Origin: Zootoca vivipara
Lineage: Eukaryota
Direction of reading: 5' to 3'
DNA: 64,000 bases
Assembly (NCBI RefSeq): GCF_963506605.1
Contig: NC_083278.1
Coordinates: forward strand, 44,826,001-44,890,000
Both the position numbers and the translations under genes were made by a program. Shown one piece after another: positions 16,053-60,526 of this stretch. Every line of letters starts with the position of its first letter. Position 1 is the stretch's first letter. Under the pieces are notes generated by a model. It was not told the DNA's origin, made no database searches, and saw only the letters and a list, made by a program, of their open reading frames with translations.

Positions 16053-16542
16053 TAAAAAGCAGAGACATCACCTTGCCTACAAAGGTCCGTATAGTTAGAG
16101 CTATGATTTTCCCAGTAGTGATGTATGGAAGTGAGAGCTGGACCATAAAGAAGGCTGATCGCCGAAGAATTGATGCTTTTGAATTATGGTGCTGGAGGAG
16201 ACTCTTGAGAGTCCCATGGACTGCAAGAAGATCAAACCTATCCATTCTGAAGGAAATCAGCCCTGAGTGCTCACTGGAAGGACAGATCCTGAAGCTGAGG
16301 CTCCAATACTTTGGCCACCTCATGAGAAGAGAAGAATCCTTGGAAAAGACCCTGATGTTGGGAAAGATGGAGGGCACAAGGAGAAGGGGACGACAGAGGA
16401 CGAAATGGTTGGACAGTGTTCTCGAAGCTACGAACATGAGTTTGACCAAACTGCGGGAGGCAGTGCAAGACAGGAGTGTCTGGCGTGCTATGGTCAATGG
16501 GGTCACGAAGAGTCGGACACGACTAAACGACTAAACAACAAC
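16053..16542 (+). mobile_element. BovB (RTE) LINE, 5'-truncated 3' end
   Basis: ORF TKVRIVRAMIFPVVMYGSESWTIKKADRRRIDAFELWCWRRLLRVPWTARRSN...LQYFGHLMRR is the RTE/BovB C-terminus; (CAA)n tail; TSD AAGGAACT. Confidence 0.95.
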
Positions 16543-32559: not shown

Positions 32560-32675
32560 ACAAATCCAGCTGGTGTGGTATATAAAAAGCTTCATGCACA
32601 ATCTTGTTTACTTAACAAATCCAGCTGGTGTGGTATATAAAAAACTTCATGCACAATCTTGTTTACTTAACAAAT
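32560..32675. repeat. ~55-bp tandem duplication
   Basis: ACAAATCCAGCTGGTGTGGTATATAAAAA(G/A)CTTCATGCACAATCTTGTTTACTTA twice, followed by ACAAAT. Confidence 0.9.
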
Positions 32676-49496: not shown

Positions 49497-51021
49497 AGTT
49501 TGTCACTAGTACCATGCTACATATCCTATGTTTCACTAAGATCTTCAATAGGTGCCCCCATCATCTGAGATGCAGCGGGTAGCTAAAGAAAACAACCTAC
49601 GGTACTTATTTTTCTTACAATTGGAGTGGATAGCCCTCCCATTGTAGAATGCTGTACCCAGGGAGCATTGCCTGAAAATGCAATGTAATTTCATGAGTAA
49701 GCAAATACCTATTTTCTGTTCAAGTCTTTTAATCCTATCTACATTACTTTTGACCTTTGGTGTTTGCTTTTATGCCATTTGTTTACACTATGGCTTTTTA
49801 ATGTTTTTAATTTTAATCTTTTATAAGCTACCCTGGAAAACTGTAGAACAGATTTGACCTGAACTAAAATCTATTTATTGGAAAACACTATTTCCCCTAA
49901 TTCTCAGAGACACCAGTTGGACTACACACAGGATCATATGCAACAAGATACCTTCCTTGATTTCAGACATTTAACAGATATATTTTACTTTTAAAGCCAA
50001 ACTGGCCCTTTATATTTTATATTTATATTTCTTTAACTAATATCATATGCCTTGTATATGTCTATTTTGTCCTCTATTAGGCACAATGAAAATTCCAACA
50101 AGCAAAATGTTGCTGAGAAGCCATTAAAGCATTCCCAGAACACCCATCACAGTATAACTAAGTCAGATCCCAAAAGTAAACTGCAATTGGCAAAAATGTG
50201 GCCAAGGCTGATGTAGGATTTTGCTGAAAAGTAAACTTGGGTGCAGATGTTTCACGTGTTAGGTGTGTGAAGTTAATCACTGAAGTTCAAGCTTCAATGA
50301 TTTCCAGAAGTGCAGCAAAGCCTTCCTGTCTGGAGTTTTGACAGCAAAAGTTTTGACACCCATGTGGTAATTTTAATTTCTAAATATTTTAACTGGATAG
50401 TCTGTTTTTACTTTATTTTCTTAAGCTGCTATTATTCATCCAAAACCTTTGGGAAGAGATGGGGCGTAATCAGAAATAATTATTTAGACAATAGCTGGTA
50501 CAGAGACATCTGGATGTTATCAACATAGATTACCCAACAGTGAATCTTTGACTATCAGAGTATTTCAGTTTTCAATGTATGTTGAGAAGTGTATGAAGTT
50601 GATAAGTATGTTTTAGTACAGTACCTTAGTTTGCCACCATAACCCCACTTATCTAGAAGTCCTATTGAATACAATAAAACTTACTTCTGAGCAGACAGTT
50701 AGAATTAAGTTATCAAAATAGCTGTACGATTTGAAAACTATAAGTTAGCATGGACAAGACAAGCCCTTTTGTACATACTCCTGAACACTGCATTCTACAT
50801 GCATTTCCATCAATAATGTAACTGGTTCCATGCATACTGAAGCTTCTTTTCCATGAAATATTTACACTCAGGCCATCCAGAGTTGGTATACAGTGGGGAT
50901 GAAAACTGTCAACTGTGAATTCCCTTTACAGGTAGGTAGCCGTGTTGGTATACCATAGTCGAAACAAAATAAAAAAAATTCCTTCCAGTAGCACCTTAGA
51001 GACCAACTAAGTTTGTCATTG

Positions 51022-51059
51022 GTATGAGCTTTCGTGTGCATGCACACTTCTTCAGATAC
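51022..51059 (-). ncRNA. Minimal hammerhead ribozyme motif, sense to PNISR pre-mRNA
   Basis: Reverse complement GTATCTGAAGAAGTGTGCATGCACACGAAAGCTCATAC, identical to 13580-13617. Confidence 0.72.
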
Positions 51060-51242
51060 ACTGAAACAGAAGTCACCAGACCCTTATATATAGTGAGAGG
51101 GTAGGGAGGTGTATTACTCAGAAGGGTGGTGGGAATGGGTGATTGCAGTCATCAGCCAATCACCCATTCCCATCACCCTTCTGAGTAATACCCCTCCCCA
51201 CCCTCTCACTATATATAAGGGTCTGGTGACTTCTGTTTCAGT

Positions 51243-51280
51243 GTATCTGAGGAAGTGTGCATGCACATGAAAGCTCATAC
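51243..51280 (+). ncRNA. Minimal hammerhead ribozyme motif (variant)
   Basis: GTATCTGAGGAAGTGTGCATGCACATGAAAGCTCATAC; changes are at the variable N of CUGANGA and a G-C to G-U pair in stem II. Confidence 0.65.
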
Positions 51281-52329
51281 CAATGACAAACTTAGTTGGT
51301 CTCTAAGGTGCTACTGGAAGGGTTTTTTTAAAAAATTGTGAATTCCCTGTTTAAAATCTCAAAGCCATTAACTCAGCTGGTAGCATTAAGCAAAACTGCT
51401 ACTCTCTTTTCTCCTCTTCCCATCTATAATGTCAGAATACTCTCCTGCATTACAAAACTCTTTATTGGGATTACTGAGTTAGTGCATGTAAAACCAGTTG
51501 AATTGCTGAAATAATCTGTATATAAAAGCTTAGTTCCCCACCCCAACTTTTTGCGTACACAATCACAGATTTTACTGCTGTGAAGCAAAATGAAGTAGAG
51601 TGCTTCACTTAGCACACATGCTTTCATAGCAAAGATGTGAAAGGCTTCAAATTAATCCTAACCATGACAATCTTTTATTTATTTCAAAGTCCAACTTTCT
51701 TCCATCATGGAACCCAAATCATTACACATAAAGTTCCCAGACTGTCTCCCATCCCGACACTGATTATTTATTGCATTTATATCCCACCCTGACTTCCCAA
51801 GAGACCCAGGAAGGCAAATAATATACACAACTTAAAAACAAAAGGCAAAAACATTCTGAAAACAATCAGTTAAAATATGCTCTGCCACCACTCCCCTTTA
51901 AGCATCTGGGGGCTGAGGAAACACCAAGGGGGCTCCCCTCTGCCGATCTGTGCAAGATCTGTGAGGTTAGAGCCTTCCTGAGCCTCAATGCTTGCAGCTA
52001 GGCCTCACTAAACTGAACAATGCTTACTGCCAAGTAAACATGCGCAGGGTACTGTTGAAAAACATTATCAGAGTTCACATGAATAACTGCAAGAATTTGA
52101 CATTTTTGGACCAGACGAATATGTAGTGAAGTATGAATTGCTTTACGAGGCTACACGAGGGGAAAAACCCACTTAGCTTAAAAAGCATCCAAGTTCCCAA
52201 CCCCATTATGGCAACTATCAGCCAGTAATCCTATATAATAAAAACGCCTATACTGTAAAGTACATGCTTATCGAGCCAATGGGCGTGACTGACTCCATCC
52301 CTTCCCTCCAGGCACCACTAGCAACAAGA

Positions 52330-53400
52330 CCACCACCGGCCCCAAACGTCAACCCCCATATATTTCATTCCGATCAACCGGGAGCGCACCGGCGCATGCG
52401 CATTATGGATTCGTAACGGGTTTTAATCTCAACCCGCCCGTTCAGTACCACAGCAAGGACAAAGGCGCATGCGCAAAAGGGGGTGGGTACGTGAGGGGTG
52501 GGGGAAAGAGAACCTCGAGAAAAGGGGTTACGTGCAGTAAATAAGCGCCAGCTGAGATAAGTCAACCAATGTGGGGGAATCGAGAGGGGCGAATCCCTCC
52601 ACGCTTCTTCACATGGGCCCAGAGGGCAGACCCCTCCCCCCACCTTCTCAACCGCGCCGGCTGCTGGGACAACAGCGCCGAGCCCTGGCGCGCCCCCTGA
52701 CGGCGAAGGGAAAGACGCCCCAGTCCTTCGGCGGCGTCGAGTGTCTTTTCAACGGCAGCCGCCCTATGGGCCCTTACTCACCCCTTCCCGCTCCTTTCCT
52801 GCCGACCGGCGGCACTAGCAGCTCTTGGGCTGCCTCCGTTTCTCCGGTAGGCTTTTTTCCCGAACCACACAAAATGGCGCCCGCTAGGACTCACCCGGAA
52901 CAGAAACTTACGTCACTGGAACCCGCTGGAGAAAGCGGTCCGACCGCCATCTTTCGTAAGGGCAGACGCGGCGCCTGAGATACTCCCTTAACGAGAAGTG
53001 GACGGGGGGGGGTGTTAGCCATTTAGGGGCTAAGAAAAGCCCACTATTGACAAGAGAATACGGGTCCTCCGAAATATGCTAGGAAGAGGAAAGAACCCTT
53101 TCATGTCTGCTGATTTTAATCTCAGTCTGCTCTTCCCCGCCACCAACACACACCTTTTAGGGTTCGGATTAAGTTTATTCTGTCGGCGTCATTTTTAGGA
53201 AGGGCGCAACGCTCTTCCTTCCGCTCTTGGCATTTCCGCCTCGAGGCGAGGCTTGGGAAGGGTAGTGGCGTGTGCCTGGTGGCTGTAAGGTGTGTTACTG
53301 GGTTGCTGGCAAGAAAGCCGGTGGAGCTGCGCATGCAGAACGGAGGATTCGTAAAACCGTTTCGGATTTCGAGACTGCTGCGAATAAGGATGAGCCCAGT
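52330..53400. promoter_or_regulatory. CpG island / PNISR promoter and non-coding exon 1
   Basis: NRF1 palindromes GCGCATGCGC (52392, 52465), YY1 motifs in both orientations (52870-52879, 52945-52953), ETS CCGGAA (52895), CRE-like TTACGTCA (52908); minus-strand GTGAGT donors at 52781 and 52894. Confidence 0.82.
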
Positions 53401-53443
53401 CCTTGCAAAATTAAGACATGTCTCACGCTCCTGTGCATGTTTA

Positions 53444-53753
53444 GGTAAAGGGACCCCTGACCATTAGGTCCAGTCGTGACCGACTCTGGGGTTGCAGCGC
53501 TCATATCGCGTTATTGGCCGAGGGAGCCGGCGTACAGCTTCCAGGTCAGCCGCTTCTGGCGAACCAGAGTAGCACACGGAAATGCCGTTTACCTTCTCGC
53601 TGTAGTGGTACCTATTTATCTACTTGCACTTTGACGTGCTTTCAAACTGCTAGGTTGGCAGGAGCTGGGACCGAGCAACGGGTATTCGAACCGCCAAGCT
53701 TCTGATCGGCAAGCCCTAGGCTCAGTGGTTTAACCCACAGCGCCACCCGCGCC
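53444..53753 (-). mobile_element. Sauria SINE with two internal deletions
   Basis: 14-bp TSD CCTGTGCATGTTTA (53430-53443, 53754-53767). Confidence 0.9.
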
Positions 53754-54388
53754 CCTGTGCATGTTTACCCAGACATAAATTTTACACTGAATTGTTTTAT
53801 TCCTAGGTGAGTGTGCGTAAGGTTGCAAGCACGGCAAGTGAAGTAGTCGGAGCACAGCTGTCAACCTTCCTATTTTTTGCACGAAATTCCTACCCAGCGC
53901 CGTTTCCTACTGCTATCCTGGATTGCCTGGGGACTCACCTTTGTTTCAGCACTTCCCAGCGGTGTGGTTTCCTTGCTGCTGTATCCCTTTGCTGGGTCGC
54001 TGCGCTGTGGAAACCACCGCTTGAGGCTTCCTTTGGCTGCTGGCTGGGCTTTCTGCCTTTGGGCCTTTGGCTTGGAGGGGCTTGGAAGATACCTGTGCTC
54101 GGAATTGGATGGATACTAACATCGACGTCCCACTCACCCATGCCAGGGATAAGGTCTGTCTGGAGTGGGGGCACATGGGGGAAAGAGAAGAAGCGGCTGG
54201 TTGGGTACAATGGCGGGCGGGGATCTCATGGGAGGGGGGCTTTTGGATTTGTTTTGGAGTTACTCCAGTCAAATCCCATGTATGAATGTGGAGGAGGTAG
54301 GCTTGCTACAGGAGAGCAATCTCTTTGCAAATTGCATGTGTGGCTACTCTAATGTGTTGCTTTTCTTCTTTTTCAAACAAAGAAAGAG

Positions 54389-57038
54389 ATGGATGGAGGT
54401 GGAGAAGACATTCCTTCAAAAAAAGCAAAGAAGTTGTGCAAGTATCTTGAGAAATGGGAGAGCGAATTTAGCTTCGTGAAGAAGAGCAGAGTGGGGGACA
54501 GTAACGCATTCTGCACAATTTGCAGTTGCGATTTTAGTGTCTCCCACGGGGGAAGGAACGATGTCGCTCAGCATAAACAATCAGCCAAGCACAAGCGCAG
54601 GCTAGAGGCACAGAAAAATGCCCCGACAATGTCCGCATTTGTGAATAGGAATACCACAGAGGCTGACCAGGTTATAAATGCAAAGGTTAAAATGGCCATG
54701 CTGTGTGCCAAAAACAACATTTCTTTCACCTTCTGCGACGACTTCAACAAGTGTGTAGCTGACATGTTCCCGGACTCTGCCATTGCACGAAAATATTCTG
54801 CGGGGGAAACCGAAACTATGCAAATCGTAAAAGGTAAGTTGATTCAAATTAAGAAACAATGGTACCTCGGGTTAAGAACTGAGGTACCACTGTAATATTG
54901 TCGGCTTATTGTTAGCTAACATTACTGTGCTCTTACTCAACAGGTGCCATAGCAACAGAGCTAGATGACGAGTTGGCCAAAACATGCCGATCTCAGCCCT
55001 TTTCATTGATGTGTGACGAATTGAACAACAGAAAAGCAGACAAAAAATTCGTCATCATGGCTAGACTCTACGATGAGGCCAATCTGCAGGTTGCTACCAG
55101 ATTATTAGAGATGCCCATATGCAATGTTGGAAATGCAGAAAATCTTTATGAAAAGCTGAGTGAAGCATTAAGGTAGGGAAGCTGCACTGTGTTGTTGGCG
55201 TGTGCAGTAGTTTGCTCTTAACTATAACCTGACATTTTGTTGCATTTTTTCTTATAGAAAAAGAGGCATTCCGTGGGAGAACCTGATAGCCTTTAACTTT
55301 GATAATGCGAGTGTCATGGAAGGCAAACACAACTCTGTTATCAGCAGACTGAAGACCAGACAGCCCCACATTCAGGATCTTGGCTGCATCTGCCACCTAG
55401 TACAGCTGGCCACTGGCTGTGCCATCAGAGCAGCACAGGTACCTGTTGAAGACATCCTGGTCAGAATATATACCCACTTTGGTAAAAGGTGAATTCATGT
55501 ACATTATTATTAGATAGGCCTTGCAAACATACACATACATATCCAGCCACTAACAAAATTATTTTCTATATTACAGTGCAAAAAGATGTGAAATTTACAA
55601 GGAGTTTGTCGATTTTACTGATTCAGACCACCTGAACCTGCTCAGGTATTGCAGCACCCGATGGCTGAGTCTGTTAACCTGCATCCAGAGAGTGTTGAAC
55701 CAATGGGACGCACTAAAGGTAAGGATGGTAAGTGCAGCAGATATATACACGCTTTACTATGCTTTGTTTTCATTTTAATTATGTCCTGCAGGCCTACTTT
55801 AACAGCCTTGAGGAGGTGGAGAAGAGTGCCAAACTACGTGATCTAGCCAGCCATCTGGGTGATCCGGTCGTGAAGATCTACTTCTTGTTCCTGGCTGCTG
55901 CCCTTAAGCCTTTATCTGAATTTAATATTGCCTTCCAGGTGGGTACCAATGACATTGTATGTATGTGTGAATAATAGTTACGGTATAAATAGGATTGTGC
56001 TAATTGTAGCATTCCTAATTCTCTGTTTTTTGACATTTTCTGCAGTCAGAGGAAGTGCAAATTCACAGGCTTGAAGAGGAGATGTGCAGGCTGATCAGGA
56101 GGATCCTGGGCTACCTCGTACCAGCCAGGGCCATCGTGGGTGTACCTCTCAGGGAGGTGGAGTATGGAGAAGGACATCAGTTGGCTGATGAAGACCTCTT
56201 TATCGGAAAAGACACAAAGGCGTTCATGAGAAGCACAGAGCTTCCTGTGTCCGCCGAGAAGAAAATCTTTCAGTGAGTATATTACCCAGCATTTATGTAA
56301 TCATGATATCATCGCACTATGAGAGTATAGGCTGTGTGCCTAAAATGTTGCCACTAATCAGTTTTTCAACTCTTATGCTGTTGTAGATCTGTGAGAAGAT
56401 TCTACGAAGCAGTGCTTCAGAAGATGTTCTCCTCCTTTCCCTTTGACAATCCACTCCTGAGGGACTTGAAAGTGCTGGACCCTGCTGCTCGCCTTGACAT
56501 TACTCCAGGGGCAGGTAGATGTTTGGGACGCTTTCCCCATTGATAGAATGATTGAGTTAGTGCATAGTTTGATCAGCACTGTTCAGTCAAACACTTGTTT
56601 TGTTTTACAGTGGAAAGGCTAGTGGCCCTGCTCCCTCAGTTGAGCTTGAGTGAAGATAAGCTGAGAGAGGAACTCACTGACTACCAGCTGACAGACAGCA
56701 AGCAACTCCCCCAAGAAGAAAAAATTGACAGATTCTGGGGCCTGCTAGGGAAGGATGTGAGGTTCAGTGAGCTGCCAAGATTAATGAAGGCTTTACTCTG
56801 TATTCCCCACAGCAATGCCAGTTCTGAAAGGGTGTTTAGTATATGGTGAGAAAGATAAGTTACAGAGAATAGAATGCCATTAGACAACAGCACTATTTGT
56901 GCTTTGCTTGCATGTAAAATCAACCACTCTGGCCCGGCCCACAAATACACTCCTTCCAAAAGAGTGTTAAAGGATGCAAAGTCTGCAACACGTTTGTATA
57001 ATAAGTCATTAATGGATGCGAGAGAGCCAAAAGAGTGA
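54389..57038 (+). pseudogene. hAT transposase, 8 coding exons: 54389-54833, 54944-55172, 55258-55488, 55577-55718, 55792-55938, 56046-56272, 56387-56514, 56611-57038 (premature TGA at 56847-56849)
   Basis: All 7 introns GT-AG with matching phases (1,2,2,0,0,2,1). Motifs: Zn finger CTIC...H..SAKH, FSLMCDE (D1), FDNASVM (D2), CICH, TRWLS, PHSNASSERVFS (E). 595 aa to first stop; ~657 aa reconstructed. Confidence 0.9.
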
Positions 57039-57064
57039 ACCTGATCAATCTGCCCATGGCGCTG

Positions 57065-57208
57065 GAGTCCCATGGACTGCAAGAAGATCAAACTGATCCA
57101 TTCTGAAGAACATCGGCCCTGGTTGCTCATCGGAAGGACAGATCCTGAAGCATCGCATGAGAAGAGAAGACTCCCAGGAAAAGAGACCCCGAGGTGGGGA
57201 AAGATGGT
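57065..57208 (+). mobile_element. Internal BovB LINE fragment embedded in the hAT 3' region
   Basis: GAGTCCCATGGACTGCAAGAAGATCAAAC...GGAAGGACAGATCCTGAAGC...CATGAGAAGAGAAGA aligns by eye to 16208-16370 with a ~20-nt deletion; no tail. Confidence 0.85.
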
Positions 57209-57629
57209 GGTGTGTAGCCTGGTGTAAATTAATTTGTAGCCTGTGGGGATTACCGCGGCATGGACTGTCCCCAAGAACTGTATACTGTCCCAGGCTGCTG
57301 ATCCCTTATTTTCAAATCCGAAAGTTGACAGCTATGAGTCGGAATGACCTACATCTAACACCACCCCTAAGCTGCAATTATAAACATTTATTTAGAAATT
57401 AAAAATCCGTAGCAGTGAATGTGATGTGCTACTCGTTTCCATGCAAGTTTGCTTAGCAGTTAGTTGAGTGCAACCTATTTCGTAGCAAGTATACAGGTCA
57501 TCACAGCTTTATGTCCAAATAAATTTGCTCAGAATTTGTGGGTGCACTGCAGCCACAGCCTTATCTAGATAAAACCCATGGAACTCTAGAGCTGCATTCT
57601 TATCTGTGATAGATTTATTAAACGCAATA

Positions 57630-60288: not shown

Positions 60289-60526
60289 CTTTGGCCACCT
60301 CATGAGAAGAGAAGAATCCTTGGAAAAGACCCTGATGTTGGGAAAGATTGAGGGCACTAGGAGAAGGGGACGACAGAGGACAAGATGGTTGGACAGTGTT
60401 CTCGAAGCTACGAACATGAGTTTGACCAAACTGCGGGAGGCAGTGCAAGACAGGAGTGCCTGGCGTGCTATGGTCCATGGGGGTCACGAAGAGTCGGACA
60501 CGACTAAACGACTAAACAACAACAAC
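60289..60526 (+). mobile_element. BovB LINE 3' end, 5'-truncated
   Basis: Nearly identical to 16310-16542; (CAA)n tail; 12-bp TSD AGCATGAGCAGA. Confidence 0.93.

Follow-up and report, generated by a model that had tools for sequence, protein, structure and literature searches.

The stretch analysed here (the window) comprises 64,000 nucleotides of the lizard Zootoca vivipara (NCBI RefSeq assembly GCF_963506605.1, contig NC_083278.1, forward-strand positions 44,826,001 to 44,890,000), and all coordinates below count from its first letter. At 53845–57344, target duplication included, it carries an insertion of a DNA transposon that belongs to the hAT superfamily; the element proper occupies 53853–57336 on the plus strand and is about 3.5 kb long. 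A previous examination of the letters alone (the sequence-only reading) had described this element as young, complete and possibly undescribed. We find that it is an ordinary decaying hAT member with an unusually split, already annotated transposase gene, and protein comparisons place its closest relatives outside the lizards in teleost fishes.

The element is bounded by 13-bp terminal inverted repeats, CACAGCTGTCAAC at 53853–53865 on the plus strand and CATAGCTGTCAAC at 57324–57336 as read on the minus strand, which agree at 12 of 13 positions. On either side stand the 8-bp target-site duplications AGTCGGAG (53845–53852) and AGTCGGAA (57337–57344), identical at 7 of 8 positions. A search of the window for the 13-mer with at most one mismatch returned two sites only, the element's own ends, against a chance expectation of 0.17. 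Inverted repeats and target duplications had both been called by the sequence-only reading, and both agree with what is typical of hAT elements (an 8-bp duplication and short inverted repeats of about 10–25 bp). The 5' non-coding region of the element (53866–54108, plus strand) has a G+C content of about 0.55 and contains three TTCCTA motifs within its first 60 bp. Part of this region (53997–54062, plus strand) serves as an exon in paralog gene models, where it corresponds to residues 131–152 of Zootoca paralog proteins with 86% (P0151) and 91% (P0001) identity.

The transposase gene lies on the plus strand and consists of eight coding exons. The main first coding exon (54383–54833), which encodes a CCHH zinc finger and the start of the catalytic domain, contains the ATG of the annotated isoform X2 at 54389. 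Intron 1 (54834–54943, 110 nt) separates it from exon 2 (54944–55172), which carries the first catalytic aspartate within a CDE motif. Beyond intron 2 (55173–55257, 85 nt), exon 3 (55258–55488) provides the second catalytic aspartate (FDNAS) and the CxxH motif (CICH), and beyond intron 3 (55489–55576, 88 nt), exon 4 (55577–55718) provides the RW motif (STRWLS). Intron 4 (55719–55791, 73 nt), into the equivalent of which a Lacerta agilis protein model shows apparent partial read-through, is followed by exon 5 (55792–55938), assigned to the insertion domain. The remainder of the gene comprises intron 5 (55939–56045, 107 nt), exon 6 (56046–56272), intron 6 (56273–56386, 114 nt), exon 7 (56387–56514), intron 7 (56515–56610, 96 nt) and the open part of exon 8 (56611–56846), which encodes the hAT C-terminal dimerisation region and the catalytic glutamate (SSERVFS). 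The joined reading frame and the identity to the RefSeq product described below support exons 2 to 7, with residue conservation as additional evidence for exons 2 to 4.

All seven introns are of the GT..AG type with pyrimidine-rich 3' ends, and each contains stops in the read-through frame. Their G+C content is 0.36, against 0.465 in the exons. The intron phases are compatible, and joining the exons by script and counting codons and stops gave a frame of 595 codons from ATG 54389 to TGA 56847.

The peptides encoded by these exons are exact, in-order substrings of the product of the Z. vivipara RefSeq gene LOC118082233, with 0–1 residue (a split codon) between consecutive pieces. RefSeq lists two protein isoforms of this gene under six accessions, and the isoforms differ solely at the 5' end. 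Isoform X2 (XP_034965228, 595 aa, ending in SERVFSIW) is named 'uncharacterized protein'; isoform X1 has 612 aa, and the exon peptides are also identical to XP_034965226. According to the N-terminus of P0189, isoform X1 begins in an alternative first coding exon (54109–54153, plus strand, start MDTNIDVPLTHARDK), which a 229-nt GT..AG intron (54154–54382, plus strand; donor 54154, acceptor 54382) separates from the main first coding exon. The 5' coordinates of isoform X1 (54109, 54154 and 54382) were placed by eye, by setting the protein N-terminus against the DNA.

The eight exons, seven GT-AG introns and 595-codon frame of the sequence-only reading hold up both in the sequence and in the identical RefSeq exons. 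An eighth intron that it had tentatively placed at 54297–54382 fares less evenly: the acceptor at 54382 is the one used in isoform X1, whereas the donor at 54297 and the proposed MNVEEKE start are absent from the two isoforms compared (X1 and X2), and the donor of X1 lies at 54154. The gene model is not new, because LOC118082233 already has exactly these exons. The description of the lineage as undescribed and invisible to screens based on open reading frames does not apply at the level of the gene model, since dozens of related fish and lizard proteins, labelled as uncharacterised, are annotated besides LOC118082233.

Several lines of evidence support the hAT assignment. The exons were searched singly, with the RefSeq products P0169 and P0189 as stand-ins for the joined protein. 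A hidden Markov model search for Dimer_Tnp_hAT, one of the checks that the sequence-only reading had proposed, matched the Pfam domain (PF05699) in the exon 8 piece 56613–56846 with an E value of 2e-6, past the Pfam cut-off; two stops at 56847 and 56856 shorten the domain in this copy. A profile built from ten family members matches the C-terminal domain of the Hermes transposase (E 1e-8). An AlphaFold model of isoform X1, computed from an alignment of 31 relatives, has a mean predicted local distance difference test (pLDDT) score of 86.6, and the best match of this predicted fold in the PDB is again Hermes (about 560 columns, E 2e-10, probability 1.00).

In the numbering of isoform X1, the key residues are C59, C62, H79 and H85 of the zinc finger, D190, D257 and E606 of the catalytic triad, C285..H288 of the CxxH motif and R347-W348 of the RW motif. 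These residues are invariant or nearly so across the 31 relatives, which extend down to 25% identity, and all of them are kept here. Conserved residues and a Hermes-like predicted fold together give the DDE core with all-alpha insertion domain, the CxxH and the RW motif that characterise hAT transposases. The motifs that the sequence-only reading had picked out are all present, and its view of a hAT element with an unusually intron-rich transposase gene is borne out by domain, fold, motifs and introns alike.

Other searches returned less. As to a BED-type assignment of the zinc finger, the CCHH spacing is conserved, and Pfam zf-BED appeared below threshold in one relative only (E 0.0024) and gave no match to exon 1. 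Among the single pieces searched against Pfam, seven of nine had no match or sub-threshold noise only, and exon 1 by itself found no match among PDB sequences. As to the subgroup within the superfamily, there are only hints from source names (ZMYM1-like, ZNF862-like, AC9 transposase) and from weak DUF4371 matches.

The copy in the window is structurally complete, but its coding capacity is not. Intact relatives are 655–659 aa long, and comparison with them identifies a broken stretch at 56847–56858 (plus strand), with an in-frame TGA at 56847 and TAA at 56856. Where relatives continue from SERVFS into MVRKIVTENR, this copy has six codons in place of the five residues MVRKI, two of them being stops. 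The ancestral C-terminus persists as a remnant in the same frame (56859–57038, plus strand), outside the annotated product and up to the ancestral stop at 57036–57038. Relatives align through 56859–57035, and end to end the remnant is 81% identical to a Nothobranchius copy (P0165) and 75% identical to an intact Zootoca paralog (P0164). The product of this copy is short by about 60 C-terminal residues.

The copy is thus not intact, because two in-frame stops cut its C-terminal domain, and its truncated transposase is probably inactive. The completeness asserted by the sequence-only reading, in the sense of a fully encoded transposase, fails on this point. We also considered an extra intron that would skip both stops. 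We rejected it: the sole available GT..AG pair spans 20 nt, which is too short, and relatives align residue by residue across this stretch.

Divergence among copies gives an impression of age. Copies in Zootoca and Lacerta share 82.5–92.8% protein identity among themselves, and this locus is 85.5–88.6% identical to its own paralogs. In a phylogenetic tree, the path from this copy to the common node of the lizard copies measures 0.049 + 0.011 substitutions per residue. Under neutral decay, this would correspond very roughly to a few percent nucleotide divergence per copy and to tens of millions of years, an uncalibrated estimate. With paralogs that are 83–93% identical, one mismatch each in the target-site duplication and the inverted repeat, and a broken frame, the word 'young' does not suit this copy.

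We next turn to the relatives of the element. Exon 1 had 2327 relatives at E<=1e-3 in a search of 1.8 billion representative proteins, and a Zootoca paralog served as proxy query for full-length searches. Relatives with more than 60% identity over the full length come only from Zootoca (at least five loci), Lacerta agilis and teleosts of many orders, the latter including Nothobranchius, Girardinichthys, Metynnis, Notolabrus, Umbra, Eleginops, Leuciscus, Triplophysa and Labeo. Below these come pipefishes at 50% and then coelacanth at 36%; identity to further fish lineages of the family is about 50%. The full-length protein search found no bird, mammal or amphibian protein above 50% identity. 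Fragments included, the hosts of relatives above 60% identity are lacertids, one agamid and teleosts, as seen in protein sets that under-sample transposons. The family alignment, scanned against metagenome and viral contigs, recovered no relative, a blank result to which we give no weight.

The similarity to fish proteins is high. This copy shares 82–85% protein identity with the closest teleost copies, and 84.9% with a Nothobranchius protein. Maximum-likelihood inference groups the six lizard sequences into a single clade (support 100) that falls inside a teleost clade (98) as sister to Nothobranchius (93), and the path from this locus to Nothobranchius amounts to 0.19 substitutions per site. 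Constraining the teleost copies to monophyly worsened the likelihood by 73 log units and was rejected by the approximately unbiased (AU) test (p = 3.3e-6). At the protein level, similarity across hosts is thus far higher than vertical descent would lead one to expect, and the tree of the elements conflicts with that of their hosts at supports of 98–100.

Among the fishes themselves, one cluster at 90% identity (representative P0174) spans Mormyridae, Cypriniformes, Esociformes (Umbra) and Sparidae (Pagrus), and another (P0172) spans Labridae (Notolabrus), Characiformes (Metynnis) and Nothobranchius. These mixed clusters imply that the family has been exchanged repeatedly and recently among distant fishes. 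Several of the Nothobranchius and Umbra copies bear the UniProt name 'Connexin 27.5', apparently a misannotation that has been passed on between entries.

The single relative from another squamate family is a protein of the agamid Phrynocephalus forsythii (KAJ7326640.1, P0002), a 183-aa predicted fragment with 68% identity to exon 1 that stops close to the boundary of that exon. It sits on a long branch, and the tree does not fix its placement relative to the lacertid clade. The fragment suggests that these elements also occur in a second family of squamates.

Fish gene models also bear on the intron positions. P0179 starts exactly at exon 2, P0173 skips exon 4, and P0172, P0177 and P0179 break off or diverge where exon 7 ends. 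Of the 117 relatives that cover exon 1 to its end, 60 terminate within 60 residues past it. From these protein-model boundaries, we infer that the fish copies may share the same intron positions.

We consider it likely that the locus represents an autonomous-type hAT insertion from a family that came from teleosts, passed horizontally into lacertid ancestors and is now decaying. Horizontal acquisition is supported because the copy is 82–85% identical to teleost copies and because the lizard clade is nested among teleost copies whose monophyly is rejected. DNA transposons have been described as evolving neutrally within genomes and persisting by way of horizontal transfers, in most of which ray-finned fishes take part (PMC7070016). 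The pattern observed here is the one that such a transfer would be expected to leave. The sequence-only reading had hinted at acquisition from a genome with compact introns, which fits both the protein identity and the nested tree. Since short introns dominate compact teleost genomes (PMC9438311), it is reasonable to read the miniature introns in this way. The direction and date of the transfer and the loss of activity are what we infer from these patterns.

A plausible course of events can be outlined. An intact member would express its transposase from a spliced mRNA with eight coding exons and a 5' intron. The protein, with its N-terminal CCHH (BED-like) finger, DDE core with all-alpha insertion domain and hAT C-terminal domain, would bind the CAYAGCTGTCAAC ends, excise the element and reinsert it elsewhere with an 8-bp duplication. 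Widespread in teleosts and exchanged among them, the family would have entered lacertid ancestors by horizontal transfer some tens of millions of years ago. There its 3' region would have acquired a fragment of a long interspersed nuclear element (LINE), and the family would have multiplied to several copies and then begun to decay; its uniformly small introns would be a teleost-type gene structure carried along with the element. The copy in the window is most likely immobile on its own and could at best be moved in trans by intact paralogs (the 659-aa models).

Several other explanations were weighed. The locus could belong to a young, autonomous and undescribed lineage whose small introns regulate the transposase by splicing, as the third P-element intron does. 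The nearly intact ends, the seven canonical splice sites, the two RefSeq isoforms with six accessions and the full-length 659-aa paralog models would suit such a lineage. We nevertheless regard it as improbable: the two stops cut a C-terminal domain that all intact relatives keep, both the target-site duplication and the inverted repeat contain a mismatch, the paralogs differ by 7–17% in protein, the two isoforms vary at the 5' end only, and the gene model is already in RefSeq. Alternatively, a hAT-derived host gene of the ZNF862-like or ZBED-like kind could have been domesticated and inherited vertically since the ancestor of fishes and tetrapods, which would account for the high protein identity between fish and lizard, the name 'zinc finger protein 862' that NCBI gives to one paralog isoform, the KRAB box in some paralog models and the intact frames of some paralogs. 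Such a gene would be expected to have lost the transposon ends and to keep an intact frame at a single orthologous locus. Here, however, inverted ends and target duplication are present and the frame is broken, the family is multi-copy in Zootoca and within single fish species, bird, mammal or amphibian proteins above 50% identity were not found, the tree conflicts with the species tree, and no KRAB was matched in the window at E<=1e-3. Domestication therefore appears very unlikely.

Vertical descent could also take the form of an active lineage that persisted in both fishes and squamates from their common ancestor onwards, its transposase kept similar by selection for activity. In favour of such persistence, the agamid fragment extends the family beyond lacertids, and distant relatives at 30–50% identity occur in coelacanth and many fishes. 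The fish orders that have copies more than 90% identical in common are over 200 million years apart, however, and persistence would require the lineage to stay active without a break for about 430 million years while its protein changed by only about 15%; other fish lineages of the family diverge by 50%. The lizard clade is moreover nested within the teleost copies instead of standing next to them (AU p = 3e-6), and within genomes DNA transposons reportedly evolve neutrally (PMC7070016). We see only a slim chance for this scenario. Contamination of the lizard assembly by fish DNA has next to no chance of being correct. High similarity to fish proteins is all that speaks for it; the insertion sits among lizard copies of a short interspersed nuclear element (SINE) with its own target duplication, carries a LINE fragment that also occurs elsewhere in the window, and has several diverged paralogs in Zootoca and one relative in Lacerta agilis. 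We rejected contamination on the basis of the flanks and the shared LINE piece.

A number of observations nonetheless weigh against horizontal transfer from teleosts followed by decay. Two Zootoca paralogs have full 659-aa frames despite about 14% protein divergence, which exceeds what simple neutral decay would leave intact and could reflect selection on some copies. The several RefSeq isoforms may mean that this locus is transcribed and that the truncated product has some role, with the qualification that RefSeq models are predictions. The agamid fragment may indicate an earlier or repeated entry into squamates. The apparent absence of the family from other tetrapods is a weak argument, because protein databases under-represent transposons. 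Finally, the case for transfer is made at the protein level, whereas the standard yardstick is identity in introns and at synonymous sites.

For three Zootoca paralogs, the RefSeq models join a KRAB box to the transposase: P0151 (LOC118081241), P0162 (LOC118080162) and P0170 (LOC118081165 isoform X1). In two models the KRAB lies upstream, and the third has a KRAB-zinc-finger tail after exon 7. In P0162, the upstream KRAB exons end in YFS and continue with KEMDGGG, a join located exactly at the equivalent of the acceptor at 54382. The three KRABs are 48–54% identical to one another, and the 64-kb window itself contains no KRAB match at E<=1e-3. It is one paralog isoform that NCBI calls 'zinc finger protein 862'. 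Transposase capture by way of splice sites pre-existing in the transposon has been described (bioRxiv 10.1101/2020.05.07.082677).

The modelled paralogs may represent such capture in progress or, alternatively, annotation chimeras within KRAB-zinc-finger clusters. The three paralog models resemble ZNF862 and KRAB-transposase fusions, with the KRAB of P0162 joined at the acceptor, whereas the locus in the window lacks a KRAB, retains the transposon ends and has a broken frame. A more far-reaching proposal, which seems to us possible but doubtful, is that of an unreported teleost-to-squamate transfer of an eight-exon hAT gene whose fish-type miniature introns came along and are still spliced, combined with capture of the transposase by different KRAB-zinc-finger genes at three Zootoca loci. 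The acceptor shortly before the start codon and the internal donors may have enabled this capture, and the resulting KRAB-hAT chimeras could be nascent ZNF862-like regulators.

A family common to many teleost orders and lacertids would add a case of transfer between fishes and reptiles. The element would also provide a natural test of whether a gene with many introns remains expressible once transferred into a very different genome. As the KRAB-containing paralog models hint, chimeric transcripts with host genes are likely to arise from its small introns and ready-made splice sites. For annotation, the lesson is that LOC118082233 and the fish 'Connexin 27.5' proteins are transposase genes.

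A comparison with known hAT elements highlights both shared and distinctive features. Hermes (Musca domestica), hobo and Ac, the founding hAT transposons, have the same 8-bp target duplication, short inverted ends, DDE core with all-alpha insertion and C-terminal hAT domain. Hermes differs in its end sequences and is only 13–16% identical in sequence. Coding introns are absent from Hermes and hobo, whereas Tol2 has three (four exons) and Ac has four; to our knowledge, no characterised hAT element reaches the seven coding introns plus 5' intron found here. Tol2 (medaka) and Tgf2 (goldfish) are autonomous teleost hATs with a spliced transposase mRNA and small introns. Compared by description and not by sequence, they differ from the present element, which has twice as many exons.

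SPIN and OposCharlie1 are mostly high-copy families with short non-autonomous derivatives. They resemble the present element as hATs that entered squamates or other tetrapods horizontally, but are set apart by description, since here a handful of coding copies is visible and the partners are teleosts. For SPIN, such horizontal entry is summarised in one study (PMC11008031). Passages of the same study describe hAT-6_XT, a vertebrate hAT found at high identity in turtles, fishes and a frog, for which its authors infer horizontal transfer (PMC11008031). Like the present element, hAT-6_XT is shared by ray-finned fishes and reptiles, and its transposase was predicted by a gene finder; it starts with TAGGGCAGGGGTGTCAAAC, in contrast to CAYAGCTGTCAAC here, and those passages name no lizard host (PMC11008031). 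We rejected membership in the same family, since the ends differ. The literature yielded nothing specific on a hAT with seven or eight introns or on this family in lizards, a search with Repbase and Dfam outside its scope and so not evidence of absence.

The window contains a second, much smaller element with related ends. This 90-bp miniature inverted-repeat transposable element (MITE) at 6816–6905 has inverted ends CATAGCTGCCAAGTT and a perfect 9-bp flanking repeat AGGTGAAAC. Its ends match the 3' end of the hAT element at 13 of 15 positions and the 5' end at 11 of 15, with little similarity in the interior. The end types of the two appear related, and cross-mobilisation is possible. The sequence-only reading had paired them as an element and its MITE; the related ends (13 of 15 over the first approximately 15 bp) form a weak link, which does not make the MITE the element's own derivative.

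The 3' region of the hAT element contains a LINE 3'-end fragment (57065–57210, plus strand) that matches 16209–16373 of the window (E 5e-34) and that we take to be of the BovB/RTE type. Compared with 16209–16373 and 60301–60348, the piece is internal and has a small internal deletion. The C-terminus of the paralog P0162 (LOC118080162) reads through the same LINE piece, which implies that the piece was already in place when at least some of the amplification in lizards occurred.

Close to the insertion, on its upstream side, is a Sauria-type SINE, and more copies follow downstream. About 1 kb upstream of the element is a CpG-rich stretch (52500–52900, G+C content 0.63–0.68), with the Sauria-type SINE between them (downstream of the stretch, at 53438–53758); over the adjoining 52853–53852, the ratio of observed to expected CpG is 0.89. 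If the stretch were a bidirectional promoter, it could drive the annotated transcripts of the dead copy. Further upstream is a near-perfect long inverted repeat (50973–51145 and 51157–51329) with 173-nt arms that are 96% complementary and 11 nt apart. The arm sequence partly recurs at 13576–13620, and the structure may be a palindromic repeat or a foldback element. At 32560–32669, a 55-nt unit is present in two tandem copies that are 98% identical.

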